Shown: in pieces, positions 4,801-52,425 of the stretch
Layout of the letters: each line of letters opens with the position of its first letter
How positions within the stretch are numbered: position 1 is the stretch's first letter
NCBI GenBank assembly: GCA_002269645.1
Contig: NIVC01000056.1
Location: forward strand, 186,001-250,000
DNA length: 64,000 nucleotides
Reading direction: 5' to 3'
From: Macrostomum lignano
Taxonomy: Eukaryota
Program-made: the position numbers and the translations under genes
The notes under the pieces: generated by a model
Databases searched by the model: none
The model's input: the letters and a program-made list of their open reading frames with translations, nothing else
What the model was told of the DNA's origin: nothing

Positions 4801-5150
4801 CGGGCTGTCACTCCACCGACTGTAAGTGGCAATTCGATTTGCCGTTCTATGCTAATTGGCTGCTTGTTCACTGAATGAAGTTGCACTCTGGCTGCAGTTG
4901 CCTGTCTGAGCTGGAATTTTGTCAGGATGCTGGACTCAACTAATGAGCACTGGCTTCCGGTGTCTAACAGCGCCTTCACACTTCTGCCATCAAGCTTGCA
5001 CTCACACTGCGAAAGTCGGTCGGGCGCGACGCTGCATCCGTCAAAGATCCCGCCGACTGTGAGCGCCGGCCTTGAAGCCGCTGCTGCTGGGCCCGCAGTT
5101 ACTGCTGGCCGGGGTTGCGGGCCCGCACACCCCAGCCTCTGGCATTTCCC
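1804..5150 (-). pseudogene. pol: Disrupted pol (protease, RT, RNase H, integrase)
   Basis: Protease ALLDTGS (4665-4979), RT (3999-4595 and 3335-4054), RNase H (TDASG...TDH...DADALSR), integrase with HHCC zinc finger and D,D-35-E core (1804-2946). In-frame stops at 4665-4667, 3124-3126 and 2956-2958. Frameshifts near ~4070 and ~3420. The RT catalytic YxDD reads FFND. Confidence 0.93.
5089..5150 (-). promoter_or_regulatory. Candidate -1 programmed ribosomal frameshift signal (slippery heptamer plus H-type pseudoknot)
   Basis: G_GGA_AAU in the gag frame (5150-5144), a 6-nt spacer, stem 1 GGCUGGGGU/ACCCCGGCC and stem 2 GGGCCCGCA/UGCGGGCCC. The -1 frame is open from here into the protease. Confidence 0.85.
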
Positions 5151-5908
5151 GGCTGTCGCCTACTGTAGCAATCTCTGGCAATGTGGCCGGCCTTGTGGCA
5201 GTTGTAGCAGATGATGTCAGACTTCGAACGGTGCTGCGGTCTCGTTGTGCTGCTCGTCCTCACTCCACAGGCTGCCAGCTGCTGCAGCTGGGAACTCAGG
5301 GTGCTCACCGATGCCTGCAGACTCTGCACAGTGTCCCGCAGCTCCTGAACTTCGCTGGATTGGCTCGGCTGAGGTTGCACCGCTGCTGCTAGGATGCTTG
5401 GCGAGCTGTGCTGCATCAGTAGCTGGGCCTTTTGAAGCGCTTGCTCTGAGGTCTTAACGCTGGAGTCCGTGCGAATCTGCCAGCTCACGGATTCGGGAAG
5501 GCCACAGACGAACTGATGGAACAGCAGAGCCTCTTGAGCATCTTTGTTGTCCACGGAGGAGCTTTTGAGCATCTTCTTTAACTCGTAAAGATACATGCGT
5601 GGAGTCTCATTCGACAAAATCTTCCTTGATTTGAACGCATCCATGACGGCGAAGTGCTCGCGGTTCGGGTGGAATGCATCATCCAATGCCTGGACTACTT
5701 TGTCGTAGTCTGCCTGATCTCCTGCCGAAAGTTCCAAATAAACGACGAGAGCCTCGCCATCCAAAAATGTGGCCAGTCGCTCCGCTTTGCACGTGTCCCA
5801 CTTGTTGACTTTTGCGCATACATTGAAACGCTGCAGCCATTCCTTAAAGTTGCCGGTACTGAAAACTCTGGGCAGCGCTGCACTGGCGGTCAAACCTTTC
5901 TCAGCCAT
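5099..5908 (-). CDS. gag: Gag (269 aa) with C-terminal CCHC zinc knuckle
   Basis: Intact ORF just downstream of the PBS; contains CYNCHKAGHIARDC. Confidence 0.93.
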   Translation of the reverse strand: MAEKGLTASAALPRVFSTGNFKEWLQRFNVCAKVNKWDTCKAERLATFLDGEALVVYLELSAGDQADYDKVVQALDDAFHPNREHFAVMDAFKSRKILSNETPRMYLYELKKMLKSSSVDNKDAQEALLFHQFVCGLPESVSWQIRTDSSVKTSEQALQKAQLLMQHSSPSILAAAVQPQPSQSSEVQELRDTVQSLQASVSTLSSQLQQLAACGVRTSSTTRPQHRSKSDIICYNCHKAGHIARDCYSRRQPGNARGWGVRARNPGQQ

Positions 5909-8699: not shown

Positions 8700-10687
8700 A
8701 TGTCCAGCAGCGCCGCCATTGACGAAGGCTACCAGGGCCCGCTAGCCAGCAAAATACGCGCCAAATTAAGCGCCGAGTTGGCGCCAAGCCACCTGCTGGT
8801 AATCAACGAGTCCGCTGGGCACGGAGCCGGGCCCACCGGGGAGTCGCATTTTAAGGTGCGGTCAAGTTTTATTTATATTTTTTTGTTAAAAGCAGGGGTT
8901 GTACGCACCCTGGCGCACTTTAAGCGACATTGTCACACAACCGGCGAGAGGCATTACTACCCATTACGCCGATTCCCCTGAGCAGGCACACAAGCGTGCG
9001 GATACATCACACAGGAGTGTACAGCGGCCCCAACTTTATTTTATCGTTAGGCATGTACACTTCACTGTGCCTTGGGGATTGGTCCTCAAGCTGACCGCTA
9101 ATTGCACGAGCAGAGCCAAGCCAAGATTCCTATTTAGCTCCAATCAATGCTCTTGGAATCGAGCCTATGCCGCTTGCACATCAGAGCGCCGCGCTAGACG
9201 GCCCTCCCCCTGTACTATATCTAGAGATGCAGGACAAATTGACACTCCTACAGTTAACCTGTTCGAACCACCTTAAAATTCTACGCAATCATTAACTGAA
9301 ATATTGCCATTGTAAATCCTCTAAAAAGCAAATCTTCCTTCATATCCCCGCAACACTGTGTGTGTGCCTTCTGAGTCTTCAAATCTTATTGTTAATCGCC
9401 TTTCAACACTAAAAAACTGGCCTTTAAATCCTTATTGTAAATCGGCATTCAGATCCCCATGAAAATTAGCGTAATGATCGGCCTTAAAAAATCCCTGTTG
9501 TTTAATGGCCTTGTATCCCCCGATGAGATTCGGCCTTCAAATCCATATTTTTTTATAAATCGGCCTTTATAAATCCCTATTTCTGAACCGGCCTTCAAAT
9601 CTCTATTTCTGGATCGGCCTTCAAATCCCTATTTCTGGATCGGCCTTCAAATCCCTATTTCTGGATCGGCCTTCAAATCCCTATTTCTGGATCGGCCTTC
9701 AAATCCCTATTTCTGAATCGACCTTTAAATTCTTATTTCTGGATCGGCCTTCAAATCCCTATTTCTGGATCGGCCTTCAAATCCCTATTTCTGAATCGAC
9801 CTTTAAATTCTTATTTCTGGATCGGCCTTCAAATCCCTATTTATAAATCGGCCTTCAAATCCCTATTTCTGGATCGGCCTTCAAATCCCTATTTCTGAAT
9901 CGACCTTTAAATTCTTATTTCTGGATCGGCCTTCAAATCCCTATTTCTGGATCGGCCTTCAAATCCCTATTTCTGGATCGGCCTTCAAATCCCTATTTCT
10001 GGATCGGCCTTCAAATCCCTATTTCTGAATCGACCTTTAAATTCTTATTTCTGGATCGGCCTTCAAATCCCTATTTCTGGATCGGCCTTCAAATCCCTAT
10101 TTCTGAATCGACCTTTAAATTCTTATTTCTGGATCGGCCTTCAAATCCCTATTTATAAATCGGCCTTCAAATCCCTATTTCTGGATCGGCCTTCAAATCC
10201 CTATTTCTGAATCGACCTTTAAATTCTTATTTCTGGATCGGCCTTCAAATCCCTATTTCTGGAACGGCCTTCAAATCCCTATTTCTGGATCGGCCTTCAA
10301 ATCCCTATTTCTGGATCGGCCTTCAAATCCCTATTTCTGGATCGGCCTTCAAATCCCTATTTCTGAATCGACCTTTAAATTCTTATTTCTGGATCGGCCT
10401 TCAAATCCCTATTTCTGAACTGTGCTTCACAAGAAGCAATCGCACATACATACACCTGTCAATCCCCTCCGCAGGTAGTGGTGGTGTCGGACCGGTTCGC
10501 TTCCGTGGCCCGCCTCCGACGGCACCGGATGGTGAACGACAGCCTTGCCGAGGAGTTGAATACGCAAAGCGCAGATCACAAACAGAAAATTCACGCCCTC
10601 AGCATTGTGGCGAAGACTCCGGAGGAGTGGGCAGCCAGCGACGCCGTGCCCGCCACACCGCCGTGCGGGGGCGGTGGCGGACGCTGA
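8700..10687 (+). CDS. BOLA1: BolA-like protein 1, two exons (8700-8855, 10475-10687)
   Basis: Spliced product ...LVINESAGHGAGPTGESHFK|VVVVSDRF...RHRMV...IHALSIVAKTPEEW...TPPCGGG with a phase-0 GT-AG intron. The start codon is tentative. Confidence 0.9.
9079..9210 (-). mobile_element. tRNA-derived SINE copy inside the BOLA1 intron
   Basis: Minus-strand tRNA-like head with B-box GGCTCGATTCC (9155-9165); homologous to 36464-36597. Confidence 0.6.
9520..10418. repeat. 26-bp intronic minisatellite
   Basis: Unit TTTCTGGATCGGCCTTCAAATCCCTA with a recurring variant TTTCTGAATCGACCTTTAAATTCTTA. Confidence 0.95.
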
Positions 10688-12796: not shown

Positions 12797-14927
12797 CTGA
12801 CCCCCAGTTAGCGACTGTCTGACCCCCAGTTAGCGACTGTCTGACCCCCAGTTAGCGACTGTCTGACCCACAGTTAGCGACTGTCTGACCCCCAGTTAGC
12901 GACTGTCTGACCCCCAGTTAGCGACTGTCTGACCCCAGTTAGCGACTGTCTGACCCCCAGTTAGCGACTGTCTGACCCCCAGTTAGCGACTGTCTGACCC
13001 CAGTTAGCGACTGTCTGACCCACAGTTAGCGACTGTCTGACCCCCAGTTAGCGACTGTCTGACCCCCAGTTAGCGACTGTCTGACCCACAGTTAGCGACT
13101 GTCTGACCCCCAGTTAGCGACTGTCTGACCCACAGTTAGCGACTGTCTGATCCACAGTTAGCGACTGTCTGACCCCCAGTTAGCGACTGTCTGACCCCGA
13201 CTGTCTGAGTTAGCGACTGTCTGACCCAGTTAGCGACTGTCTGACCCCAGTTAGCGACTGTCTGACCCCCAGTTAGCGACTGTCTGACCCCCAGTTAGCG
13301 ACTGTCTGATCCACAGTTAGCGACTGTCTGACCCCCAGTTAGCGACTGTCTGACCCCCAGTTAGCGACTGTCTGACCCCCAGTTAGCGACTGTCTGACCC
13401 CCAGTTAGCGACTGTCTGACCCACAGTTAGCGACTGTCTGATCCACAGTTAGCGACTGTCTGACCCCCAGTTAGCGACTGTCTGACCCACAGTTAGCGAC
13501 TGTCTGACCCCCAGTTAGCGACTGTCTGACCCCCAGTTAGCGACTGTCTGACCCCCAGTTAGCGACTGTCTGACCCACAGTTAGCGACTGTCTGATCCAC
13601 AGTTAGCGACTGTCTGACCCCCAGTTAGCGACTGTCTGACCCACAGTTAGCGACTGTCTGATCCACAGTTAGCGACTGTCTGACCCCCAGTTAGCGACTG
13701 TCTGACCCCCAGTTAGCGACTGTCTGACCCACAGTTAGCGACTGTCTGATCCACAGTTAGCGACTGTCTGACCCCCAGTTAGCGACTGTCTGACCCCCAG
13801 TTAGCGACTGTCTGACCCCCAGTTAGCGACTGTCTGACCCCCAGTTAGCGACTGTCTGACCCACAGTTAGCGACTGTCTGATCCACAGTTAGCGACTGTC
13901 TGACCCCCAGTTAGCGACTGTCTGACCCACAGTTAGCGACTGTCTGACCCCCAGTTAGCGACTGTCTGACCCCCAGTTAGCGACTGTCTGACCCCCAGTT
14001 AGCGACTGTCTGACCCACAGTTAGCGACTGTCTGACCCACAGTTAGCGACTGTCTGACCCACAGTTAGCGACTGTCTGACCCCCAGTTAGCGACTGTCTG
14101 ACCCCCAGTTAGCGACTGTCTGGCCCACAGTAAGCGACTGTCTGACCCCCAGTTAGCGACTGTCTGACCCACAGTAAGCGACTGTCTGACCCCCAGTTAG
14201 CGACTGTCTGACCCACAGTAAGCGACTGTCTGACCCACAGTAAGCGACTGTCTGACCCCCAGTTAGCGACTGTCTGGCCCACAGTAAGCGACTGTCTGAC
14301 CCCCAGTTAGCGACTGTCTGACCCACAGTAAGCGACTGTCTGACCCACAGTTAGCGACTGTCTGACCCCCAGTTAGCGACTGTCTGACCCCCAGTTAGCG
14401 ACTGTCTGACCCACAGTTAGCGACTGTCTGACCCCCAGTTAGCGACTGTCTGACCCACAGTTAGCGACTGTCTGATCCACAGTTAGCGACTGTCTGACCC
14501 CCAGTTAGCGACTGTCTGACCCCCAGTTAGCGACTGTCTGACCCAGTTAGCGACTGTCTGAAGCGACTGTCTGACCCCCGACTGTCTGAGTTAGCGACTG
14601 TCTGACCCACAGTTAGCGACTGTCTGACCCCCAGTTAGCGACTGTCTGACCCCCAGTTAGCGACTGTCTGACCCCCAGTTAGCGACTGTCTGACCCACAG
14701 TAGCGACTGTCTGACCCCAGTTAGCGACTGTCTGACCCACAGCGACTGTCTGACCCCCGACTGTCTGACCCCCGACTGTCTGACCGACTGTCTGACAGTT
14801 AGCGACTGTCTGACCCCCGACTGTCTGAGCGACTGTCTGACCCCCAGTTAGCGACTGTCTGACCCCCAGTTAGCGACTGTCTGACCCCCAGTTAGCGACT
14901 GTCTGACCCCAGTTAGCGACTGTCTGA
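12797..14927. repeat. 22-bp minisatellite, about 2.1 kb
   Basis: Unit CTGACCCCCAGTTAGCGACTGT with CCCAC and ATCCAC variants; degenerates at the right end. Confidence 0.97.
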
Positions 14928-15739
14928 CTGCTACTTAATTAACTTTGACCGTTTGACAATTGTTTTTTTAGTCTCGTTGTGCGTTGAAGCCCGCCCTGTT
15001 CCCCTGTTTTGGGTGTTTTAAGTTTTATAAGTTCTAATTTACTAAGAGAGCCGTATAGACCGGATGCTGTACGGAGCTGGGATATTTAGGGAAGTCCACC
15101 ATTTTTTGCTTGCTGTTGGCTGTGAATATCGCCGCGGTATTTTATTAGAAAGTATCCCTAGAACTGTTTTGAATTTTAATATTCGGTCGTTTTATCAACT
15201 GGAATATCGCACCATCTATCATAGATTACTCATCGATCAATATTCTAATATTTTATATTAATTTGCTGTCTTTGCTGTGCTTCTTTATTGTCTCGTGCGT
15301 TTAACCCCGTAGCAGCTTTTTGCCACTGTTTTTGTGCGATGCCTTTGCAACACCATTTCCTGTTTTCAGTCATAAAAATAAAATTCAACGCTACTCATGC
15401 TACTGCTTAGCAGTAGTCTAAAACGAACCTTATTTGTTTTAATTAACAATAAATTTGTGATTTACGCATAAAACGCCTCGTTATCGGGATGTCTGTAGAT
15501 TGTTATCAAGCACTATATCACACTTGAAGAATTAGGTTTTGTTTTTGTACTGTATTTATCCTCTTCTTTCACATTAAAGTACACAGGGCCAAGTCTGATT
15601 GGAAGTCGGTGAGAGTTGGAAAATAGAAACTGATGATGAGTGGAAAAAATGGGAACACGTGCGAACGACCATCGACATTCTACCCGTAACTGCTGCAAAA
15701 TGGCGAATTGCTCAATCGCTCTGACACTAAATGGTCATA

Positions 15740-16912
15740 ACTGAGATACAGAGTCGTCACAACTGATACAGAGTCACTCTAACTGACACTGAATCGCCAC
15801 AACTGATACAGAGTCGCTCTAACTGACAATGAATCGTCACAACTGATACAGAGTCACTCTAACTGACACTGAATCGCCACAACTGATACAGAGTCGCTCT
15901 AACTGACACTGAATCGTCACAACTGATACAGAGTCACTCTAACTGACACTGAATCGTCACAACTGATACAGAGTCACTCTAACTGACACTGAATCGTCAC
16001 AACTGATACAGAGTCACTCTAACTGACACTGAATCGTCACAACTGACACTGAATCTTCACAACTGACACTGAATCTTCACAACTGACACTGAATCTTCAC
16101 AACTGACACTGAATCGTCATAACTGACACTGAATCGTCATAACTGACACTGAATCGTCATAACTGACACTGAATCTTCACAACTGACACTGAATCGTCAT
16201 AACTGACACTGAATCGTCATAACTGACACTGAATCGTCACAACTGACACTGAATCGTCATAACTGACACTGAATCGTCACAATTGATACAGAGTCGCTCT
16301 AACTGACACTGAATCGTCACAACTGATACAGAGTCACTCTAACTGACAGAATCGTCACAACTGACACTGAATCTTCACAACTGACACTGAATCGTCACAA
16401 CTGATACAGAGTCACTCTAACTGACAGAATCGTCACAACTGACACTGAATCTTCACAACTGACACTGAATCGTCACAACTGATACAGAGTCACTCTAACT
16501 GACAGAATCGTCACAACTGACACTGAATCTTCACAACTGACACTGAATCGTCACAACTGATACAGAGTCACTCTAACTGACACTGAATCGTCACAACTGA
16601 TACAGAGTCACTCTAACTGACACTGAATCGTCACAACTGACACTGAATCTTCACAACTGACACTGAATCGTCACAACTGATACAGAGTCACTCTAACTGA
16701 CAGAATCGTTACAACTGACACTGAATCTTCACAACTGTCACTGAATCGTCACAACTGACACTGAATCGTCATAACTGACACCGAATCGTCATAACTGACA
16801 CTGAATCGTCACAACTGACACTGAATCGTCATAACTGACACTGAATCGTCATAACTGACACTGAATCGCTCTAACTGACAGAATCTTCACAACTGATACA
16901 GAATCGCACTAA
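15740..16912. repeat. 20-bp minisatellite with alternating monomers (40-bp higher-order unit)
   Basis: AACTGACACTGAATCGTCAC alternates with AACTGATACAGAGTCACTCT. Confidence 0.95.
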
Positions 16913-17983
16913 CTACGGTAGAACCAGCAAAATGTATGTAGAATCGACACTAACTCTTTAAAATCGCTTAAAACTGCTGCAGAATGGCCCCTAGCAGCTG
17001 CAGAAGCACGCTTGAACGATAGACAGTGCAGCAGTTTAGAAAAGAATTGAAACCGACAGCAGCCGCATTGAATTGTGAAATTAATATCGTGTGAAATATT
17101 AATTATATATGAACAGGCAATCAGCCGGTTTGCAATTGTATTATGTGTATGTAAACAAAGCATTTACAAAACTACCAATGCTAGTTGATATAAAAACGGC
17201 GAACAATGGTGAAACATTATTATTCTCATTATTATTTTAAATCGGTATGCAATTAGCAGTTGAAATTATTCTGAACAAAGCAGGCGGTGACTGTGACAGT
17301 TGTTTGCCAAGCGGCAATCAACAATAAACTGACAGCAAAAAGTGCACTGCAATTAGACAGGAGCAGCTCGAACGGGAGGGGAGTTTAAAGACCAGCTAAT
17401 GGGTATATAAAATAAGCAGAAGCCTGTTCAAGGGTCCTCACGGTCTCCTACAAATAGTTCTTGCACTGGCCACCCAATCACTGGCTCTGGCGCAGATTAA
17501 AATATTGAAACTGTTTATCTGCGTAGTCAGTAAATGGCTGCACAGCCAGTATGTACACAGGAACTGCCAGAGCCAGCAGAAACTAATCATTCAATTATAT
17601 GCAACAGGTGAATATGCACGGACAGCATAAATATAGTATAAATATAGAAATAGCAGTTAGAACGGGACAACAAAGGAACACGGAAGGTCATTTACTTACA
17701 GAGAAGGTGCCCAAGGCCGATTTAGATTGAAGAGACAATCTCTAGGGAGATGGGGAAATGCAGGAGAGTGAACTAGCTGGATACAGGCTGGGTCAGAGCC
17801 GAAGAAATTTATAAAAAAAGGTCAATTTGAATAACACAACGGCGCAAGGAAGATGATTTTGTGAAGAAGAGTTGGATGATCAGAGTTGCAAAATAAAGCA
17901 ATTGAAACAGAAGAGACCAGCACGGAGCCGCTCCGCTTATTAAAAACAAAGGCAAATGTCTGCTTGGCCCATGGGCGGCGGCC

Positions 17984-27238
<9,255 letters not shown>

Positions 27239-27989: not shown

Positions 27990-30900
27990 AAAAATAGAGC
28001 ACAAATCCATGTTTGGCAAGAGTTACCCGTTTTTAAAACAAAACATGCACAAAAACTAAGAAACCTGGCTTAATATTGTTGATGATTGTTGCAAGTTTTA
28101 ACTTCAATAGCTTGTAATTGTTTTTTGGCAAATAAAGTAAGTTGCTAACAATAGAAAAAAACAGCAGTGGTTTTAACTAAAAATGGTGCTTATATGAACA
28201 GATATGCAATTAACAGCTCAGCCACAGCTATTGCATGACACACGTCACATCTGAAGGTTGCATATGGCTGTTCAGTCCAAGGACTGGGGGGTTGCCACAC
28301 ACCCTGAATTACCCCAGCTAATGCTGGCACCCACTTTATAGCTAGGTGAACCAAAGCAATATAGAGTTAAGTATCTTGCTCAATGACACAAATTGTTCTA
28401 GGTGGGACAATAATTGAGCCATTGACCTTCAAGTTATGACATACATGTGCAACACCTGGCCTAGCAGGGGCCAGTCAAGGTAAGCCACGAAAAATGCCCA
28501 CCTAGAAATACAGATTTAGTATTAATTAGATGACTTTAGCCTTAAAGATTTAGTCAAAGTTAGTCTAACCATTTATCCAAAATTACATTAATTTTTGCTT
28601 TGGTTTCTTACATAGGTAAGTCTTAGTTTTGATCAGAAAGTAAGTCCCATGGCCAGAATAAAGCAGGGGGGCTGTGTATGTAAGTCATAAGCATAACTAA
28701 CCTTTGAGCATAATACATTGTCTTGGATATCAATGTTTTATTTTAGTCATGTGTATTAGTTTGTATTTTAATTTTTTGATTTGTTTACTAAATGTGAAGG
28801 TAAATGAATGCACTTTGATTAAAATAAGTATCTTTATATATAAAAAACTTTTTAGGAATATTTTAAGACTTTAAAATTTGATACACCTTTATAAGTCAAG
28901 TTATAATATATTTATGTTCTGTATTTATTATATTTTATTTTTAATAATACTAAATAGTTTTAATTAGTAACTAAAATGAATACTATTAGAAGTATTCAGT
29001 ATACCTGAAGATAAAAACTATTACATATCTTCCTAACACAATTTTTTGTTTAAATTCTTATTCAATTATTTGTTAATAATTCGTAAAATTTAAATTAATA
29101 AATATAGGTAACAAAAAATCAAATTATAAACTGTAGTCATCTATAGTAATGAAATAAAATAAAATATACTTTGCATTGACTAGAAATAGAATAGGTGGTT
29201 AAAATCAAAATTTCTTCTTATTAGATTTCAAATATTATATTGTAAATGTGTATTGACTTTTATAATAGATTAATATATTTCTTTATGTGCATAGCTCGTC
29301 CCAATTCTTTTACAAAATTGATAATTGCATAACTCATTTTGATTGCATGCCAAATCTAGGAAAACACATTTGTTATAATACCTATATTTTTCATAATATT
29401 TTATGTGAACTAATTTGTGTTTAAACTAGCAGTAAATTATAGTATAAATAGAAGCATTTTTGTCGGAGAGTTATTTATTGATTGGTTTCTTTATATTTAA
29501 CAATTAAGACTAAAAATGGGTCAATAAAATTCAGAAATGTAAATAAATTAACAATAGATTGTACAGTCCAGCGGAGCGCTCACAAAGTTAAAATGAGAGA
29601 AGGAGAGAGAGATAAATGAGCACAAGTGTACACCTGGAATACTCTAAAGAGGGCACTGGCACAATGATTGGCAAGTTGCTTATTTAGGATTGGTTTATGC
29701 AATTTTATATACAGGGCTTCAAGCACTTTTAGTCTGTATTCATTTGAGCATATATGGATGGTGGAAAAGTTTTTATCTATTTGGCTGTCATAGAGCAGAG
29801 CAAGATTCCTATATTAGCTTTAATGGATTAATGCTTATTAATGATTATCAGTTAACTTTCAGTTAATTTAACAAAATTAAGAGTTTATAAGTTAATATTT
29901 TTTGTTTTAATGCTAACACTTTTGCCATTAATGGAAGTTAAGATTTTCATTAATGGTATCTAACACAGTTCTTTGAATCTATATTGCTTAAAACCTACTT
30001 AAACTAAAGAAGTGAAAACCATATGATCTATAATCTCTTTTGCTATTGTATACTTGTATTTTTGTGATAGTTTTTGCTATAGGGAAATTTTTAGTGCTAA
30101 ATCAATAGTTTGGCATCTTATTTTTCACTTTCAAGTACCATAGGCACTAGGCTTATCAAAAAGTAACTTTTGTCACCAAGTCTAGCATTCTAAAAAATGA
30201 ACTAGAAAAAGTGCCACTTAAAAAAAGTAATCTATAGTACTAAAAATGCTGAAACTCAAACTTTGCTCAATACTAATTATACAATTATTCAAGAATCTTG
30301 TAATAAACAAAATTATATATACAAAAATGATATCTCATTATAAGTTTTATATGATTCAAAAATCTTATCTAAAAAATAAGCTTTATAATATAGGCCTATG
30401 TAATTTATTTAAATTTCTTTTTTTTCAAAGTTTTTATTTGCCAATAGATAAATTGACTATATAATAAGCAAGCCTATAGTATTATGCATGGTTATATTAT
30501 ATTAATATATCAATTGGTTTCAAAATTAGTATAAATACAGAGTGAAAGGTAAAAAAAATAGACATGGCACAACTTATAGTATTTTGAGCTTATCCTCCAC
30601 TTTGTTGCAAACTAGCCAAATATTCAAGTTAGGTTTATGTATTCTAGTATATAAAGCTTTAGCAAATTTTAATTTATTATTATATTTATAATATTTAATT
30701 AATAATTTCATTATTAATTTATTAACAGTTTTTAGACTAGTTTGTTCATAAATATACTAGTATATTAGGATTATTTGGATTGAATTAGCCCTAACAATAT
30801 CTATGATAGACAAATTTTGATAAACTTGTTATAAGTTCATTATCTTATAACTATTCAATAAGATTCATATTTTTGAGCTATTGTTTTTTGCAGACAAAAG

Positions 30901-31640
30901 AGTGGCAGACAAACTGATAGGCAGACAAATGACTAGGTCTATTATTGTATTAACTGCTTGTTTTAGTCTAGGCATAATTAAGAATAAAGTAAATATATAG
31001 GTATTTAAAATACATAGAATCTTTAGTTACTTACTGGTGGCCGATTTGGGTACATTCTTTTGGCTGACTTTATGTTTTTCTGTTTAGTTGAATCAATGGT
31101 GCTGGCTTTTATATTAGTTTTTTAGTTAAAATTAGCTAGTGACAACTGTGGTCAACAATATATAATTCAATTTTATCAAATTGAAATCCAAAATATTAGA
31201 TAGACCTAAAGAATAAGTGGAATCTTCAACACACAAGGTTTCTCCTATGTCAAGTAATTTAGGCCTAACTAAACAAAGTTTTAAATGGCATGGGTGTTTC
31301 ACAGTAAATGACAAATTTTCTATTAGGCCTATATTTCAGACATTTGGCCTAGAAATATTTGTTGTGAATTAGTAAATATAAAACAAAATTAATTTTTACC
31401 AACCAATAACACGAATTATTCGCTTTGGTTAGGCCTATGTCAAAAGAAATAAATAACTAACTTAGAAAGCTAACCACACCATAAAAAATCGGACAAAGAG
31501 ACGAACAAATAGCAAATAACGCTTTCTTTAGTTTAAAATTACCAGATTTCGTATAGGCATGTATAAAAATTAGTCTGAAAATATTTTTTTAATTATTTGC
31601 ATTTCAGTCACTTCTGCATTTCCGAAACTTTAAGATTTTG
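27990..31640. other. AT-rich, strongly CpG-depleted block upstream of the TLE Q-domain exon
   Basis: About 10 CpG counted by eye in 3.4 kb. TA and CTAG are abundant. Shares motifs with the 1-1431 block. Confidence 0.5.
28320..28440 (-). mobile_element. Degenerate SINE-like fragment
   Basis: AAGTATCTTGCTCAATGACACAA...AATTGAGCCATTGACC resembles a SINE central region next to an antisense B-box. Judged by resemblance only. Confidence 0.3.
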
Positions 31641-32039
31641 TTTTAATTGTTTGTTTAACTTTAATTTTATAGATTACGGCCGTCGACAATTGCCTTAACC
31701 TGCTGTCAATGAGAAGGGGTCGTTCCAATACGCCAATTTTTTTAACGTCTGAGTAAATTTTTTAAGTGTGACGTTGTCCATCCAAGTAGCCCCGTGAAGG
31801 GCCGTTTTAGCATGCGGTACCAATTTATAATATTGTTAATTTAATGGTCCAGTCCTCTCACGCGTACGTCTGCTTTAAGTAGTGCCCAAAGAATTTTAAA
31901 CAACTTGCGTACATTTGTAAAGCCTAAGTACAGTAGGCGATCGATAATTTCTGCTTTTTTCTCGCCGGTCAATAGAAAATCCGCGCATAAATTATATGTT
32001 AGCCTGAAATTAAGGTTTCCGCGCGCACCCACCCGGCCC

Positions 32040-40493: not shown

Positions 40494-42978
<2,485 letters not shown>

Positions 42979-43450
42979 ATGCGCAAATGACGCTACTGAC
43001 TACCAAAAATAGTAGTATGATCGAGTCACTTCCGTCTTGCCTGACACATCATCAGCACCTTCCCATGATTTTCTCAACCATTTTCTCCCTCATCCTTCAT
43101 CCTCAATTGTTTCGTTTTCAATAACAAAATGCCTGCCGTCCAACGATGCTAGCAACAAGCTGTAAAGTTTGCTTCTAAATTCTAAATTTTAGTTTTTGCA
43201 ATTGCCTAGTAGTGCAGCCGCCATGTATTCATGAGCAGCTTGAGTTGCCAAGCCTTCGGTAGAGACTTCTCAGTAAAGCGCTTTGAAGAACGAGATTCTC
43301 AAGGACCTCGAGTGCAGATGGCAAAGCGGAATTCGGGGAAAACAAAGGAGAGCAACTGCAGCTCGTAAGCATGCCGAAATGTCAGAGCGCTTTTGAGATA
43401 TTTGAGTATGTAAACAGTATCTCCATTGATTAAAAGTACTTAATTTATAA

Positions 43451-43856
<406 letters not shown>

Positions 43857-44744
43857 CCTCGTAGATAGATGGATAGATAGACAGGCAGGTAGACAGACTG
43901 GCAGACCGACAGAAAACCACTTTTAATTGAAGAAGAATGGATGAGAGATCTTTCGTGTTGTGTTTCAAGTGCACTTGTCTCTCCTAGGGGCCAAGAATAT
44001 TCGACCCTCCGCTCTGCGCATCTCTCCTGCGCTCACTCCAGTACTTTTTTGAGTGCCGATGAGCTGCCAGCTGTGCCTCATCAAGATCGCTCTTAAGATT
44101 TGAAGATTTCCAGCCAGAGGGACTGCTCGGGTAGCGCATTCTGGAGAACTCGTGCAGAGTGTACGGTAGAACTGTACTATAGATTTTACTCTATGTAAAA
44201 GATCTCTTATTGAGATTCAAGCGTTGCGATAATTCGGTCTCAACCCATCTCATCTATCTAATGCATAATTGAGAAGCCTCAATGCCGCTCCCAAAAAGCA
44301 ACACCAAAGGCTCTTAAACACGAAAAAAAGCCAACTCACGAAAGAAAAGTTACTATTGAGACTTTTTAGCCGGCTTAGCGAATTCCATTCAAGCAATGGG
44401 TCTCGAAGAAGCAGAAGCAGATGTCAGGGGATGGCTGCAAGCATAGATGGAATAATGCTCAAGCATCAAGGAACTTTCTCACGCACTATAGCAGACTGGC
44501 TGAGTGAGCAGCTACTCAAGGGGACTCATTTGCTCCAGCAGTATTGGATTAATGCGGCATCCTCACGGCACTGGGCCTGAGGGCGGTGATCGATCACTGC
44601 ATGGCAACTCCATCATTCGACACGCTCTCAGAATCCTTTTCACTCCATTATGAGAATCATCTTACACAGTCGGCTTCATGAGCATCATCGATTATTGAGG
44701 CATTGCGGAGGCTGCTTAAGCTTCTAACGCTGTTACCTGTCCAT

Positions 44745-45042
44745 AGACATGTCACACATGCCTTCACTATAGACAAGACACATATCACAGTGCCATAGAC
44801 ACATGTCATAATGTACCATAGACACATGCCAGTACCATAGACACACGCCATATGTACCATAGACACACGCCATATGTACTATAGACACATGCCAGTACCA
44901 TAGACACACGCCATATGTACCATAGACACACGCCATATGTACCATAGACACACGCCATATGTACCATAGACACATGCCAGTACCATAGACACACGCCATA
45001 TGTACCAAGACACACGCCATATGTACTATAGACACATGCCAG
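44745..45042. repeat. 22-bp minisatellite
   Basis: Unit CCATATGTACCATAGACACACG. Confidence 0.92.
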
Positions 45043-45265
45043 TTCCAAATCAGACGTATCAAATAGCATCTGCTCCGAACTACGGCAAGGAATTCAGTAT
45101 TGATGAAAGTTATAGAAATTCTGGCTGCAGAAATTCTGCATTCTGATTGGCTGAATTCAGCACCAGATGTCGTATCTGCTGTATAAGTAACGCCGTTGTA
45201 TACTAATGATTTGCTAAATTTCCAAAATCAGTACAAGAAAGCTCACCTATTACAAGCCTGTTAAA

Positions 45266-45727
45266 ATGCCACCCACCGTAAAACTGGCCCTCGCTCTGAT
45301 AGCTCTGATTCACCTGATTGATTACCCAGCTCTCGCCTTGAACCAACCGGGTAAGACAGCGAGAACTTCTTTCAAACTTAATATCAAGAAAAATTCTCAT
45401 TTTTCTACCCTAGTTGATTCTGTCCCAATTTATTAAATTTCAGATTTTTCACCTGAAGAAATTGCCAGCCTTAATGAGGCTATGGAAAAGCGATTTGCAG
45501 GTAAACACCTATTCTGTACGGCGTAAACACGAGTCTGTTTTGTAAATACCTTGATGTTAAGCAAGAATTATGGATTTATCGCTCCTCCTGCAGACCCGGA
45601 GAGCCTGTTCGGCAGTCCGCTGCAGTGGAACAGCGAGGACATCGAGTTCCGGCCGGCCTCCAGCACTGCGGGCTTCAAGCCGCTGAGAGGCAAGAGGACC
45701 CGAGGCCGAGGCAGACCTGATAACTGA
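45266..45727 (+). CDS. Putative neuropeptide precursor (91 aa), exons 45266-45350, 45444-45500 and 45594-45727
   Basis: MPPTVKLALALIALIHLIDYPALALNQPDFSPEEIASLNEAMEKRFADPESLFGSPLQWNSEDIEFRPASSTAGFKPLRGKRTRGRGRPDN. It has a signal-peptide-like start, a KR site and a G-KR amidation signal. Both GT-AG introns are phase 1 and preserve the frame. Confidence 0.75.
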
Positions 45728-46039
45728 GCAGCCTTTTAGACTGCAGACTAAACTACACACACCTGTACTCGAGCTTAACACCTTTGATTCGAAAGGAGCT
45801 CATTAAAGTTTCATGCCAATTCGGAAAACTTTGAATTAAAACTAAGTAGGATCCCTGCAAGAATTGGCTCGCATTTTTATTTAGCGTTTTGTCTTACTAT
45901 AAGTAGAGAAATAAGCAAAATGATTTTTACCATTGAATTTGTTCAAACTGTCGATTGAAGTCTCGTAAAATTGAGCCAATGCTAATGCTTGTCGTGCTGA
46001 TTGCACTATTATTAGATAAACCGCCAAAACGATGGCGCA

Positions 46040-47110
46040 AAACTGCATAGAAATGGCGCCAACATGCATAGAAATGGCACCAAATTGTATAGAAATGGCG
46101 CCAACATGCATAGAAATGGCGCCAAAATGTATAGAAATGGCGCCAACATGCATAGAAATGGCGCCAACATGCATAGAAATGGCGCCAACATGTATAGAAA
46201 TGGCGCCAACATGCATAGAAATGGCACCAAATTGTATAGGAATGGCGCCAACATGCATAGAAATGGCGCCAACATGCATAGAAATGGCGCCAACATGCAT
46301 AGAAATGGCACCAAATTGTATAGAAATGGCGCCAACATGCATAGAAATGGCGCCAAAATGTATAGAAATGGCGCCAACATGCATAGAAATGGCGCCAACA
46401 TGCATAGAAATGGCGCCAACATGTATAGAAATGGCGCCAACATGCATAGAAATGGCACCAAATTGTATAGGAATGGCGCCAACATGCATAGAAATGGCGC
46501 CAACATGCATAGAAATGGCGCCAACATGCATAGAAATGGCGCCAAATTGTATAGAAATGGCGCCAACATGCATAGAAATGGCGCCCAAATGCATAGAAAT
46601 GGTGCCAAAGTGCATAGAAATGGCACCAACATGCATAGAAATGGCGCCAACATGCATAGAAATGGCGCCAACATGCATAGAAATGGCGCCAACATGCATA
46701 GAAATGGCGCCAAATTGTATAGAAATGGCGCCAACATGCATAGAAATGGCGCCAACATGCATAGAAATGGCGCCAAATTGTATAGAAATGGCGCCAACAT
46801 GCATAGAAATGGCGCCCAAATGCATAGAAATGGTGCCAAAGTGCATAGAAATGGCACCAACATGCATAGAAATGGCGCCAACATGCATAGAAATGGCGCC
46901 AACATGCATAGAAATGGCGCCAACATGCATAGAATTGGCGCCAACATGCATAGAAATGGTGCCAAAATGCATAGAAATGGCGCCAACATGCATAGAAATG
47001 GCACCAAATTGTATAGAATTGGCGCCAACATGCATAGAAATGGTGCCAAAATGCATAGAAATGGCGCCAAAGTGCATAGAAATGGCGCCAAAATGTATAG
47101 AAATGGTACC
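46040..47110. repeat. 21-bp minisatellite
   Basis: Unit CATGCATAGAAATGGCGCCAA. Confidence 0.97.
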
Positions 47111-47639
47111 ATAATGTACACAATTTAGTCTAGGAGTGCACATATGAAACTCCATGAAATGAAGACCTATTTCCTCCCATTCTTTCCTCGCCAACAGTAA
47201 TTCAAGTGCATCAGAAATCTCAGTGCAAACGTTTAGGCTAATTTTTTGATAAGGCTAATCGTTTCAACTTGTGCCCGTTTTAACTATGCACCTCAGCACA
47301 GAGCCGCACAGGTTAAGTCCCCCCTGTCCGCAGCGAATATTGAATGGGAATTCAGTCAAGCTTGTTTGGCACACCTGGGCCACAGTGCCTTATCTTATCA
47401 GTTCTGGCGCACCCGCTAACCCTCTCTCCAGGGCAAACGGCCTCACGTAAGGTTGGGAGCAACCCCCTCCAACCTCCAACTGATAAGGAAAGTGGGGACG
47501 CCAGGTGTGCAGTCTGAGTAGGCCCAATATTAGCTATCTGTATGCACATGCATTTTATAGCGGACTCATCAAGAACCAGGGAAGCGAGGCGCACAAGAAT
47601 TGTCTTCGGTCTTTTCATCTGTCAGTCTGTCGATTAAAA

Positions 47640-49635
47640 ATGCAAATCACAGCATTTGTCTTTGCACTGCTGTCCCTGCCTGCTCTGGTGGCAGCGCAGG
47701 CGGCCTCGGCCGGCATCCAGTACATCATCGTGATCGACGCTGGCAGCACGGGCACCCGGCTGAACGCCTACAAGTTCCAGCTGGACGACAGCCACTCCAC
47801 CGGGCTGAGGATCCTCGAGCTGAGGGACAAGAAGATCTCGCCAGGCATGTCGGCCTACAAGAACTTCCCGGGCCGCCTGCGGCAGGCTCTCAGCCCGCTG
47901 ATGAAATTCGCCGAAGCTTACGTGCCGGCCAGTTTCCATGGCAACACCACAGCGATAGTGCGAGCGACGGCCGGCCTGCGACTGCTGGCGTCGAGGGATC
48001 GAGCCGCGGTGTCCCGGGTTGTCGTTGAAGTGCTGCGCAAGTCGCCATTCTTGGTGCCGGCCGCGGACGACAGGGCTGTGCGAGTCATCTCGGGCAGGGA
48101 GGAGGCCGAGTACGGCTGGGTGTCCGTGAACTTCCTCATGGACACCTTCGACCAGCCGGGCGGGGAGACTTACGGCATGTTGGACATGGGAGGCGGCTCC
48201 ACACAGATCACCTTTGTGCCTAAGGAGGACGACTTGCAGGTGCGTAGTATCCTCAGATTAGTTAGTCAGTCAGTCAGTCAGTCAGTCAGTCAGTCAGTCA
48301 GTCAGTCAGTCAGTCAGTCAGTCAGTCAGTCAGTCAGTCAGTCAGTCAGTCAGTCAGTCAGTCAGTCAGTCAGTCAGTCAGTCAGTCAGTCAGTCAGTCA
48401 GTCAGTCAGTCAGTCAGTCAGTCAGTCAGTCAGTCAGTCAGTCAGTCAGTCAGTCAGTCAGTCAGTCAGTCAGTCAGTCAGTCAGTCAGTCAGTCAGTCA
48501 GTCAGTCAGTCAGTCAGTCAGTCAGTCAGTCAGTCAGTCAGTCAGTCAGTCAGTCAGTCAGTCAGTCAGTCAGTCAGTCAGTCAGTCAGTCAGTCAGTCA
48601 GTCAGTCAGTCAGTCAGTCAGTCAGTCAGTCAGTCAGTCAGTCAGTCAGTCAGTCAGTCAGTCAGTCAGTCAGTCAGTCAGTCAGTCAGTCAGTCAGTCA
48701 GTCAGTCAGTCAGTCAGTCAGTCAGTCAGTCAGTCAGTCAGTCAGTCAGTCAGTCAGTCAGTCAGTCAGTCAGTCAGTCAGTCAGTCAGTCAGTCAGTCA
48801 GTCAGTCAGTCAGTCAGTCAGTCAGTCAGTCAGTCAGTCAGTCAGTCAGTCAGTCAGTCAGTCAGTCAGTCAGTCAGTCAGTCAGTCAGTCAGTCAGTCA
48901 GTCAGTCAGTCAGTCAGTCAGTCAGTCAGTCAGTCAGTCAGTCAGTCAGTCAGTCAGTCAGTCAGTCAGTCAGTCAGTCAGTCAGTCAGTCAGTCAGTCA
49001 GTCAGTCAGTCAGTCAGTCAGTCAGTCAGTCAGTCAGTCAGTCAGTCAGTCAGTCAGTCAGTCAGTCAGTCAGTCAGTCAGTCAGTCAGTCAGTCAGTCA
49101 GTCAGTCAGTCAGTCAGTCAGTCAGTCAGTCAGTCAGTCAGTCAGTCAGTCAGTCAGTCAGTCAGTCAGTCAGTCAGTCAGTCAGTCAGTCAGTCAGTCA
49201 GTCAGTCAGTCAGTCAGTCAGTCAGTCAGTCAGTCAGTCAGTCAGTCAGTCAGTCAGTCAGTCAGTCAGTCAGTCAGTCAGTCAGTCAGTCAGTCAGTCA
49301 GTCAGTCAGTCAGTCAGTCAGTCAGTCAGTCAGTCAGTCAGTCAGTCAGTCAGTCAGTCAGTCAGTCAGTCAGTCAGTCAGTCAGTCAGTCAGTCAGTCA
49401 GTCAGTCAGTCAGTCAGTCAGTCAGTCAGTCAGTCAGTCAGTCAGTCAGTCAGTCAGTCAGTCAGTCAGTCAGTCAGTCAGTCAGTCAGTCAGTCAGTCA
49501 GTCAGTCAGTCAGTCAGTCAGTCAGTCAGTCAGTCAGTCAGTCAGTCAGTCAGTCAGTCAGTCAGTCAGTCAGTCAGTCAGTCAGTCAGTCAGTCAGTCA
49601 GTCAGTCAGTCAGTCAGTCAGTCAGTCAGTTAGTC

Positions 49636-49679
<44 letters not shown>

Positions 49680-50513
49680 GGTTAGTTAGTTCATTAATTA
49701 GCTAGCTAGCAACCGGCCGCCATCACAACCTGCCAGGACAGCTACCGAGTCGTGTTCGAGACGGTGCGGGGCCGGAACTACGCCCTGCACCAGCACAGCT
49801 ACCTGGGCCTCGGCATGTCGCAGGCCATCCTCACAATGCTCGGCCACGTCGACGCTACCGCGGAGCCGACAGCCAACCTCAGTCGCTACGTGTCGCCCTG
49901 CCTTCACCCGGACTTTTCATCGACCTTCAGCTTCGGCAGCGTCACTGTAGACGTCGCGGGAGATCCCGACGTTGCTCCGGCTGACCGGCTGTCCGTCTGC
50001 CTCCGCGCCGCCCGACGCGCCCTCGCCGGCGGCAACGTGCACCAGCCGCCGGGCGTGAAGCACGCCAAGTTCGTGGCCGTCAGCTCATTTTTCTATGTAG
50101 CCCGCCAGCTGGTTGACTCGGACCCGCAGTGGCGCGCCGCTGTTCCCGGCAACGTGACGTTGATGCAGCTCGCCCAGGCCGCCGGGCGGATGTGCGCCAA
50201 CCCGCCAACCTCTGGCAGGTACGCGCCCTACCTGTGCTTCAACCTGGCCCACATTATCACCCTGCTCAGGGAGGGCTACCGCTTCCAGGAAGAGCAGGCG
50301 CTATACGTCACTGACGCAATCGACGGCTACTCGGCTGGCTGGTCTCTGGGCCTGGCAATCCACTACCTGACCTGCCACGACCCTGTCATCGTCCGTTGCC
50401 TGGTGCCAAACTCGAGCCGCGGCTCCGCTGCCGCATCCCCGGAACTCTGGAGCTTCTTCATGACGGCTGCCGAGCTGCTGCTGCCTGCCGTCATCAACGC
50501 TGCTGGCGCTTGA
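47640..50513 (+). CDS. GDA1/CD39-family apyrase, NTPDase5/6-like (about 458 aa), exons 47640-48239 and 49737-50513
   Basis: Apyrase conserved regions DAGSTGTR, ATAGLRLL, SGREEAEYGW, DMGGGSTQ and GWSLG, plus HSYLGLG. N-terminal signal peptide and a phase-0 GT-AG intron. Confidence 0.92.
48264..49690. repeat. (CAGT)n microsatellite of about 1.37 kb followed by (TAGT)n, filling the apyrase intron
   Basis: No interruption seen from 48264 to 49630. Confidence 0.99.
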
Positions 50514-50976: not shown

Positions 50977-51439
50977 TAAATCTCTCCGAGGCGCACTTCA
51001 AGCTGGCAGCATCTACTCAGCGCGGTCGGAAATGTGTTTGCAGCTGCACTGTGCTCGAATTCCTGTTCTGAAAAATATCATAAATTATCCCAGGCAGAGA
51101 CCAGACGGCTCGCATTGTCAGAACAAAGTTTATGGGACTCTGGTGGCTCATAGCGATTCGAATCACGAACTCAGTTTGAGCAGACGAAGGATAAACAGTG
51201 AGCAGTCAGCTGAGTGCTCCTCAGCCTCCCTCCAAAGCTAACAAACAAGATTGGCAACTGTCTTTGAATAGGGCTTCAAGTTTATGCACTCCCTGTGAAA
51301 ACATTAATTTCTACCTGGGTAGCTTCTGATACATGCAGAGATTCAGATTGGTTCAGAGCATTGTGATATTTATGGAACTGAAAGCTAAGTTGGTGACTCG
51401 GGCCCAATAATGGTCTATCTCATAAGTTTAAAGACAATA

Positions 51440-52425
51440 GAATAGGATATAATCGATAGAATAGGATAGAATTCATTGAATAGGAAAGAATCCATTCAAC
51501 AGATAGAATCGATTGAATAGCATAAAATCGATTAAATAGAATAGAACGATATAATTGGATAGAATAGGACAGAATTGATAGTAAAGGATAGAATAGGATA
51601 GAATCGATAAAATATGATACTCGTAGAATCGATGTTATAGGATAGAATAGGATAGAATCCATTAAATAGGATAGAATCGATATTATAGGATAGAATAGGA
51701 TAGATTTGATATTATAGGATAGAAAAGTATAGAATCGATTAAATATGATACTCGTAGAATCGATGTTATAGGATAGAATAGGATAGAATCCATTAAATAG
51801 GATAGAATCGATATTATAGGATAGAATAGGATAGAATTGATATTATAGGATAGAATAGTATAAAATTGATTAAATCGAATAGAATCGATATTATAGGATA
51901 GAATATAATAGAATCGATAAAATATGATACTTGTAGAATCGATTAAATAAGATAGAATTGATATTATAGGATAGAATAGTATAAAATTGATTAAATCGAA
52001 TAGAATCGATTAAATATGATACTCGTAGAATCGATATTTTAGGATAGAATAGGATAGAATCCAATAAATAGGATAGAATCGATATTATAGGATAGAATAG
52101 TATAAAATTGATTAAATCGAATAGAATCGATATTATAGGATAGAATATAATAGAATCGATTAAATATGATACTCGTAGAATCGATATTTTAGGATAGAAT
52201 AGGATAGAATCCAATAAATAGGATAGAATCGATACTATAGGATAGAATAGGATAGAATCCGTTAAATAGGATAGAATCGATATTATAGGATAGAATAGGA
52301 TAGAATCGATATTATAGGATAGAATAGATTATAGTATATCAATTATAGGATATAATTATCGGATACTATGGGATAGACTATAGGATATAATTGATTATAG
52401 TATATAATAGGATAGAATCGATTAA
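51440..52425. repeat. Degenerate AT-rich satellite
   Basis: Shuffled ATAGGATAGAAT and AGAATCGAT modules. Confidence 0.85.

Follow-up and report, generated by a model that had tools for sequence, protein, structure and literature searches.

In the genome of the flatworm Macrostomum lignano, which has been proposed as an experimental model system (PMC1828727), we found a small three-exon gene that, with a probability of roughly 0.6 as judged from its sequence features, codes for a precursor that yields one signalling peptide of 34 residues with an amidated C-terminus, either a neuropeptide or a hormone. The gene lies in a 64,000-nucleotide stretch of DNA that was analysed as a whole and is referred to below as the window. 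A chance open reading frame (ORF) is unlikely, because the amidation motif is rare, signal-peptide-like starts occur at a rate of 0.6%, the coding-like base composition is confined to the exons and two independent annotations exist. We regard the gene as a new candidate amidated peptide precursor; a flatworm tachykinin has not yet been reported in the literature.

Gene model and genomic copies

When the segments 45266-45350, 45444-45500 and 45594-45727 of the window are joined on the + strand, they form a 276-nt frame whose translation, MPPTVKLALALIALIHLIDYPALALNQPDFSPEEIASLNEAMEKRFADPESLFGSPLQWNSEDIEFRPASSTAGFKPLRGKRTRGRGRPDN*, is 91 aa long and agrees exactly with the protein quoted in an earlier note on this DNA, which had proposed the three-exon ORF and had also placed it, correctly, between two minisatellites, a 22-nt-unit array on one side and a 21-nt-unit array on the other. 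Both introns are 93 nt long and of the GT..AG type. The features of the gene and of its immediate flanks, in window numbering, are as follows.

44793-45041: minisatellite with a 22-nt unit, 11.7 copies, upstream of the peptide gene
45183-45189, + strand: TATA-like element TATAAGT, recognised by sequence reading, 44-50 nt 5' of the annotated 5' end; a putative promoter element
45233-45265, + strand: 5' untranslated leader, which appears translated (TRKLTYYKPVK) in the 5'-partial GenBank model PAA92305.1
45266-45350, + strand: coding exon 1, with the start codon, the codons for residues 1-24 of the predicted signal peptide (45266-45337) and the first part of the acidic spacer; ends in phase 1
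45351-45443, + strand: intron 1, 93 nt, GTAAGA...TTTCAG, G+C 0.30
45444-45500, + strand: coding exon 2, 57 nt, frame-neutral, in which the acidic spacer extends to 45487 and is followed by the KR44-45 site at 45488-45493 and the beginning of the predicted peptide at 45494-45500 (FA and the initial nucleotide of the Asp codon)
45501-45593, + strand: intron 2, 93 nt, GTAAAC...CTGCAG, G+C 0.40
45594-45688, + strand: exon 3, remainder of the predicted 34-residue peptide (DPESLFGSPLQWNSEDIEFRPASSTAGFKPLR)
45671-45688, + strand: codons of the tachykinin-like GFKPLR, within exon 3
45689-45697, + strand: Gly80-Lys81-Arg82, the amidation-donor Gly and the dibasic site, which together with Arg79 make a furin/PC-type RGKR
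45698-45727, + strand: C-terminal tail TRGRGRPDN and stop codon TGA (45725-45727)
45802-45840, + strand: two putative polyadenylation-signal-like ATTAAA hexamers (45802 and 45835) in the 3' flank
46032-47106: minisatellite with a 21-nt unit, 51 copies, downstream of the peptide gene

The G+C content is 0.54, 0.40 and 0.65 in exons 1 to 3, as compared to 0.30 and 0.40 in introns 1 and 2 and 0.36-0.37 in the flanks, and the GC3 of the coding sequence (CDS), 0.62, approaches the values of 0.72-0.83 found in the neighbouring exons with Pfam support. Upstream of the leader, the genomic sequence contains an in-frame stop (45206-45208), and an AG at 45230-45231 stands directly before the annotated 5' end (~45232-45233, in the context ...TTCCAAAATCAG). 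Many mRNAs of M. lignano are trans-spliced, and the annotated 5' end of this gene may represent either a spliced-leader trans-splice acceptor or a transcription start.

An exact-sequence look-up identified the same 91-aa protein in GenBank and UniProt (PAA50402.1 and A0A267DPB9, 'hypothetical protein BOX15_Mlig008231g3', Macrostomum lignano). This match bears out the flatworm origin that had been suggested from the sequence and, at the same time, qualifies the description of the ORF as hidden: it is indeed absent from the list of unspliced ORFs, but the protein was already present in both databases. The annotated gene spans positions 45233-45727 of the window (10001-10495 in locus L002). A second GenBank entry, PAA92305.1, is 5'-partial and has 11 residues, TRKLTYYKPVK, ahead of the Met, which are the translation of window positions 45233-45265; because this entry carries translated 5'-UTR, the model is apparently transcript-derived. 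In addition, an independent UniProt model (A0A1I8H6M5, 72 aa) agrees on the boundaries of exons 1 and 3 and skips exon 2, and two annotation efforts have thus called the gene independently. We conclude that the gene is genuine, annotated but uncharacterised, and apparently transcript-supported. In the searchable papers, neither the gene and protein identifiers nor FKPLR or PLRamide in the relevant sense were found; the flatworm neuropeptide catalogues of McVeigh 2009 and Koziol 2016, where the precursor may bear an 'npp' number, lay outside this search. The main text of Collins 2010, on planarian prohormones, mentions neither a tachykinin nor a PLR peptide.

The gene is present in two genomic copies, one in the window on NIVC01000056.1 and the other on NIVC01003643.1 (locus L001). 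The earlier characterisation of the gene as single-copy accordingly holds for the peptide, of which there is one per precursor, and not for the gene itself. The second copy is 97.8% identical to the window copy across the gene, and the two encode identical proteins: within the 462 nt of CDS and introns there are 2 differences, one synonymous (45721, GAT to GAC) and one intronic, with no non-synonymous change, as compared to 17 differing columns in the 363 nt of the immediate flanks. Because the wider region is overall ~99% identical between the copies, the divergence of the gene is not clearly below the regional background of ~1%, and the gene does not clearly stand out from its surroundings by stronger conservation.

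These data bear on the possibility that the gene is a transcribed but non-functional young ORF, whose features of secretion and processing are accidental and from which no bioactive peptide is made. The location in a minisatellite-rich, fast-evolving region, the two copies that are too alike to yield a signal of selection, and the outcome of two database-wide searches, neither of which found homologs outside M. lignano, would all be compatible with such an origin. We nevertheless consider it very improbable given that the frame is intact and identical in both copies, that coding-like G+C and GC3 are limited to the three exons, that a signal-peptide-like start is found in just 0.6% of comparable frames and that an amidation motif of the observed kind is expected only 0.044 times in the window.

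Precursor layout and predicted product

Residues 1-24 of the precursor are predicted to form a signal peptide that consists of the n-region MPPTVK, a 12-residue h-region (L7-I18, with a 9-residue Kyte-Doolittle maximum of 3.29) and an A-x-A site, with cleavage after Ala-Leu-Ala24 and before Leu25. The prediction was made with a home-made classical rule for the n-, h- and c-regions, not with SignalP, and the same rule is passed by 5 of the 783 ATG-started open frames in the window. The signal peptide is followed by the acidic spacer LNQPDFSPEEIASLNEAME (pI about 4), Lys44-Arg45, a 34-residue segment, Gly80-Lys81-Arg82 and a nine-residue basic tail, such that the processing sites lie between KR and F and between RGKR and T, with Gly immediately N-terminal to the dibasic pair. 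There is no Cys in the precursor. Each element of the layout that had been outlined before (signal peptide, acidic spacer, KR, peptide, G-KR) is therefore found, including a leader that passes the rule-based test. In the six-frame translation of the 64-kb window, the motif F.[GAP].RG[KR][KR] occurs once, against 0.044 expected occurrences.

What we observe are features of the sequence; reading them through the established PC/CPE/PAM pathway, we infer all the enzymatic steps that would lead to the mature peptide. The 24-residue signal peptide would be removed after Ala-Leu-Ala24. In the regulated secretory pathway, a prohormone convertase would then cleave the precursor C-terminal to Lys44-Arg45 and to Arg79-Gly-Lys-Arg82. 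The Lys-Arg pair would be trimmed by a carboxypeptidase E-type enzyme, and peptidylglycine alpha-amidating monooxygenase would amidate Arg79 at its C-terminus, with Gly80 as the donor. The expected output is the acidic spacer peptide together with one mildly acidic amidated peptide, FADPESLFGSPLQWNSEDIEFRPASSTAGFKPLR-NH2 (FADPES...AGFKPLR-NH2), which has 34 residues, a monoisotopic mass of 3794.869 and a pI of 4.5, with 5 acidic versus 3 basic residues. Of the two products that the earlier note had offered, it is this longer form, located between KR45 and Gly80, that is predicted.

The other one, GFKPLR-amide, is not favoured by the sequence, in which S-T-A stands in front of GFKPLR and an upstream cleavage site is absent. 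The 34-residue segment has only two other basic residues, Arg67 and Lys76. Both precede a Pro, and positions P4, P6 and P8 relative to Arg67 are free of basic residues. By their established specificity, prohormone convertases spare monobasic sites in a context such as that of Arg67. Since neither of the internal residues Arg67 and Lys76 has basic residues upstream of it and Pro comes after both, we do not predict any shorter form. That the active product is nonetheless the hexapeptide GFKPLR-NH2 or the 12-mer PASSTAGFKPLR-NH2 is, of all the readings considered here, the one to which we give the least credence. Most of the listed tachykinins have 7-15 residues, and a cut after Arg67 would release a 12-mer of typical size (mass 1229.688), but for the hexapeptide, the S-T-A ahead of GFKPLR includes no basic residue, and for the 12-mer, convertases following the established rules do not cut at an Arg that is followed by Pro and has non-basic residues at P4, P6 and P8.

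The same layout can be set against a different kind of secreted product. The gene might encode a small protein or peptide of a non-neuronal gland (e.g. prostate or seminal fluid, adhesive or rhabdite), with furin-type trimming at RGKR and a merely coincidental tachykinin-like end. We consider this unlikely because an acidic spacer, KR, peptide, Gly and dibasic pair in a Cys-free 91-aa precursor constitute the classical neuropeptide layout, even though the gene is an orphan found in M. lignano only, as are many lineage-specific secreted proteins, and RGKR doubles as a furin motif of the constitutive pathway. Furthermore, the acidity of the 34-mer (pI 4.5; 5 acidic and 3 basic residues) speaks against a cationic antimicrobial peptide, a candidate that was rejected for this reason.

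Resemblance to tachykinin-type and other peptides

A Pfam scan of the precursor at E<=10 yielded zero families. A word-indexed search of 5.8 billion proteins returned M. lignano models only, with no homologs outside this species, and a HMMER search of 1.84 billion representatives retrieved only the exon-2-skipped M. lignano model and a repetitive protein, P0004 (326 aa, with KKWNSQQLEGRP repeats), which was rejected as a relative because the match is a low-complexity artefact. Given that homologs outside M. lignano were not found in these collections, which apparently do not cover the transcriptomes of other Macrostomum species, membership in a family has to be judged from the C-terminus. Neuropeptide precursors diverge fast, and for this reason the missing homologs weaken the case for membership in the tachykinins without excluding it.

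The C-terminus of protostome tachykinin-type peptides is FxGxR-amide, with GFxxxR-amide in annelids and molluscs, and in the supplementary table of the review by Nassel and colleagues, the annelid and mollusc tachykinins are nearly all of the form G/A/S-F-x-x-x-R-amide. The GFKPLR-G-KR sequence of M. lignano fits the annelid/mollusc consensus GFxxxR-amide, encoded as ...R-Gly-dibasic. Pro occupies the position of the Gly in six listed mollusc tachykinins, five of which end in FxPxR-amide, namely FGFAPMRa of the oyster, which has been reported in an oyster peptidomic survey as well, SDALAFVPTRa and ASLHNTHFIPSRa of the octopus, and QLNFIPSRa and ISAEAFAPSRa of the cuttlefish. We derived a position-specific scoring matrix (PSSM) from published tachykinins of annelids and molluscs, 35 in all, of which 18 have Gly at position -3, 7 have Ala and 5 have Pro. 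Under this PSSM, GFKPLR scores 9.19 bits, above 6 of the 35 true members (leave-one-out range, 7.25 to 18 bits). The probability of such a score is 1.35e-4 for a random hexapeptide and 2.3e-3 given a C-terminal Arg, values that are weakened by a factor of some 30-40 because the tachykinin match was chosen post hoc among that many possible families. The likeness of the FxPxR-amide end to tachykinin-type peptides, which had been noticed before, is thus upheld by the mollusc precedents and by a PSSM score inside the range of the members.

Compared with the listed lophotrochozoan tachykinins, such as Cragi-TK1 of Crassostrea gigas (FGFAPMR-NH2), the Patinopecten peptide YGFHALR-NH2, Oct-TKRP-IV (SDALAFVPTR-NH2) and Sepia TK-6 (ISAEAFAPSR-NH2), the M. 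lignano peptide is alike in the Arg-amide, Phe at -5, Gly at -6, Pro at -3, the Gly followed by a dibasic site and the origin from a secretory prepropeptide. The two differ in size, the predicted M. lignano peptide having 34 residues and the listed annelid and mollusc peptides 7-13, and in number, with one copy per precursor in M. lignano as opposed to several in most of the listed species. Moreover, none of the reference peptides has Lys at -4, and homology between the precursors was not found.

It is possible, although on the present sequence evidence doubtful, that the gene is a true ortholog of the protostome tachykinin-type peptides and encodes the missing flatworm ligand, which would act via a tachykinin-type G protein-coupled receptor (GPCR). 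The fit of GFKPLR-Gly-Lys-Arg to the consensus, the five FxPxR-amide mollusc precedents for Pro and a PSSM score among those of true members all agree with orthology, as does the Ser-rich PASSTAGF, which resembles APSSSGF and AAPSGF of the tardigrade and Urechis peptides. Against this stands the fact that the likeness is confined to about four constrained positions, that the Lys at -4 occurs in 0 of the 35 reference tachykinins and that convergence on short amidated motifs is common among neuropeptides. The length of the predicted peptide has counterparts in N-terminally extended tachykinins of 39-40 residues listed from one spider and one scorpion, but the single peptide copy contrasts with the several copies in most of the listed invertebrate tachykinin precursors. 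At the level of the precursor, membership in the tachykinins is not borne out: there is a single copy, and Pfam (E<=10) and the two database-wide searches revealed no similarity to any relative. On the side of the receptor, a tachykinin-type receptor has been reported for a monogenean flatworm, and the 2019 review of tachykinins by Nassel and colleagues states that the peptides themselves have not been discovered in flatworms, which would leave a place for such a ligand.

Several other families were compared with the precursor. The natalisins, a sister group of the tachykinins, have the consensus FxPxR-NH2 in Drosophila, so that their C-terminus is shared with FKPLR-G-KR of M. lignano, and they are likewise fairly long (15-24 residues in Drosophila). 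However, natalisins have been described from arthropods and tardigrades only, are multi-copy in most of the species listed (2-15 copies, with one each in two tardigrades) and act on a receptor paralogous to the tachykinin receptor, whereas the M. lignano gene is a flatworm gene that encodes a single peptide. It is unlikely that such a gene is part of the natalisin duplication of the arthropod line, and the natalisin affinity raised in the earlier note is accordingly not retained.

Precursors of the DH31/calcitonin type and of the CRH/DH44 type consist of a signal peptide, a spacer, KR, a 30-40-residue peptide, GKR and a tail. This architecture and the inferred PC/CPE/PAM route are as in the M. 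lignano precursor, but the ends of those peptides (Pro-amide and Ile- or Val-amide, respectively) differ from PLR-amide, and there is no sequence similarity. NPF/NPY peptides have 36-39 residues, end in RxRF/Y-amide and directly follow the signal peptide. This family was rejected, in line with the earlier exclusion of NPF, given the PLR-amide end and the spacer and KR that separate the predicted peptide from the signal peptide. The C-terminal signatures of myomodulin, kisspeptin and calcitonin/DH31 are LRL-amide, LRF-amide and P-amide, respectively, and all three, along with pyrokinin/PRX-amide, were rejected because of the mismatch in C-terminal chemistry; in the pyrokinin FxPRL-amide, the order is P-R-L and not P-L-R as in M. 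lignano. Flatworm NPF, luqin-type and pyrokinin/PRX-amide peptides resemble the predicted peptide in being amidated products of small precursors, and the luqin-type peptide of parasitic flatworms is located at the C-terminal end of its precursor, but the M. lignano precursor has neither an RF-, RY- or RW-amide end nor a WRPQ/WRPH motif. The luqin/RYamide type, with WRPQ/WRPH...RF-amide (or RY/RW) and usually two C-terminal Cys in the precursor, was rejected because the motif is absent and the precursor has no Cys.

Returning to the amidated signalling peptide, the reading that we prefer, the mature product would most likely act via a GPCR as a neuropeptide or hormone, and its GF-x-P-x-R-NH2 end would play the part that the receptor-binding end plays in protostome tachykinin-type peptides. 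Because of this resemblance of the C-terminus, the first receptor to consider as a target is one of the tachykinin type. Signalling by tachykinins is considered to date back to the ancestor of bilaterians. When the Capitella tachykinin receptor was used as a query, 1597 matches were obtained, and the best 120 of these 1597 all came from other phyla, with none from flatworms. One monogenean transcriptome holds a receptor that has been placed with the tachykinin receptors, and receptors of Schistosoma and Schmidtea show weak, BLAST-level similarity to tachykinin receptors. In flatworms, peptide receptors greatly outnumber the known ligands, and many of them are orphans.

Our data tentatively raise the possibility that the M. 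lignano peptide is the first flatworm tachykinin-type ligand, such that Platyhelminthes would have kept this signalling via a highly diverged, single-copy, N-terminally extended FxPxR-amide peptide. If so, it would become clear why searches for the FxGxR-amide motif missed the flatworm tachykinin, and a ligand would be supplied for orphan tachykinin-like receptors of both free-living and parasitic flatworms. With this candidate ligand, the retention of tachykinin signalling in flatworms could be tested directly, by assaying a single synthetic peptide on a panel of receptors. Should the pairing hold, the GFxPxR-G-KR motif would provide a handle for the identification of counterparts in parasitic flatworms, whose neuropeptide receptors are discussed as drug targets; should it fail, the gene would be an ordinary case, one more lineage-specific amidated peptide precursor.

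Surroundings of the gene

Two genes flank the peptide gene on the same strand, and neither is informative on its function.

40494-42978, + strand: protein kinase gene
47508-50513, + strand: GDA1/CD39 nucleoside phosphatase gene, after the peptide gene

Tandem repeats are abundant around these genes and differ between the two genomic copies. The second copy contains, at L001 3978-9153, a minisatellite with the 24-nt unit TGCAATAATCCTTGGTTTATCAAG in about 216 copies (5.2 kb), which lies ~130 nt 5' of the annotated 5' end of the gene and is missing from the window copy (at 45098-45103); this array could influence the promoter activity of the second copy. In the second genomic copy, the 21-nt array downstream comprises about 15 copies of its unit, as opposed to 51 in the window. 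An array of 19/131-nt units located downstream of the CD39 gene (51437-51996) is apparently several kb longer in the second copy (L001 about 14600-18700). In the window, about 109 copies of (ATAG)n at 43447-43881 separate the kinase gene from the peptide gene, and the GDA1/CD39 gene contains, at 48260-49678, a near-perfect (AGTC)n microsatellite that runs for 1.4 kb, with about 355 copies and 99% matches, and which is presumably intronic and gives rise to an artefactual 714-aa ORF at 47505-49649.

Farther from the peptide gene, a 4-kb block at 28001-32000 has a low G+C content of 0.28-0.29, as compared to 0.40-0.56 elsewhere and 0.33 in positions 1-2000 of the window, and contains zero ORFs of 150 aa or more. 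A gene for a Groucho/TLE-type co-repressor occupies 19172-27238 on the - strand, with the Q-rich TLE_N domain in the ORF 25901-27238 and WD40 in the ORF 19960-20616; the ORF 19172-19951 has sub-threshold, low-complexity matches only (Extensin_1 below the cut-off, and Lactococcin, for which no individual stretch passed by itself). Finally, a segment resembling an LTR retroelement is found on the - strand at 1804-5908, with the following parts.

1804-2946, - strand: rve and zinc-binding integrase domains
3335-4054, - strand: RNase H/RT
3999-4595, - strand: RT
5099-5908, - strand: gag-like zinc knuckle

Because these domains are on separate ORFs, the element is probably broken by frameshifts or stops.
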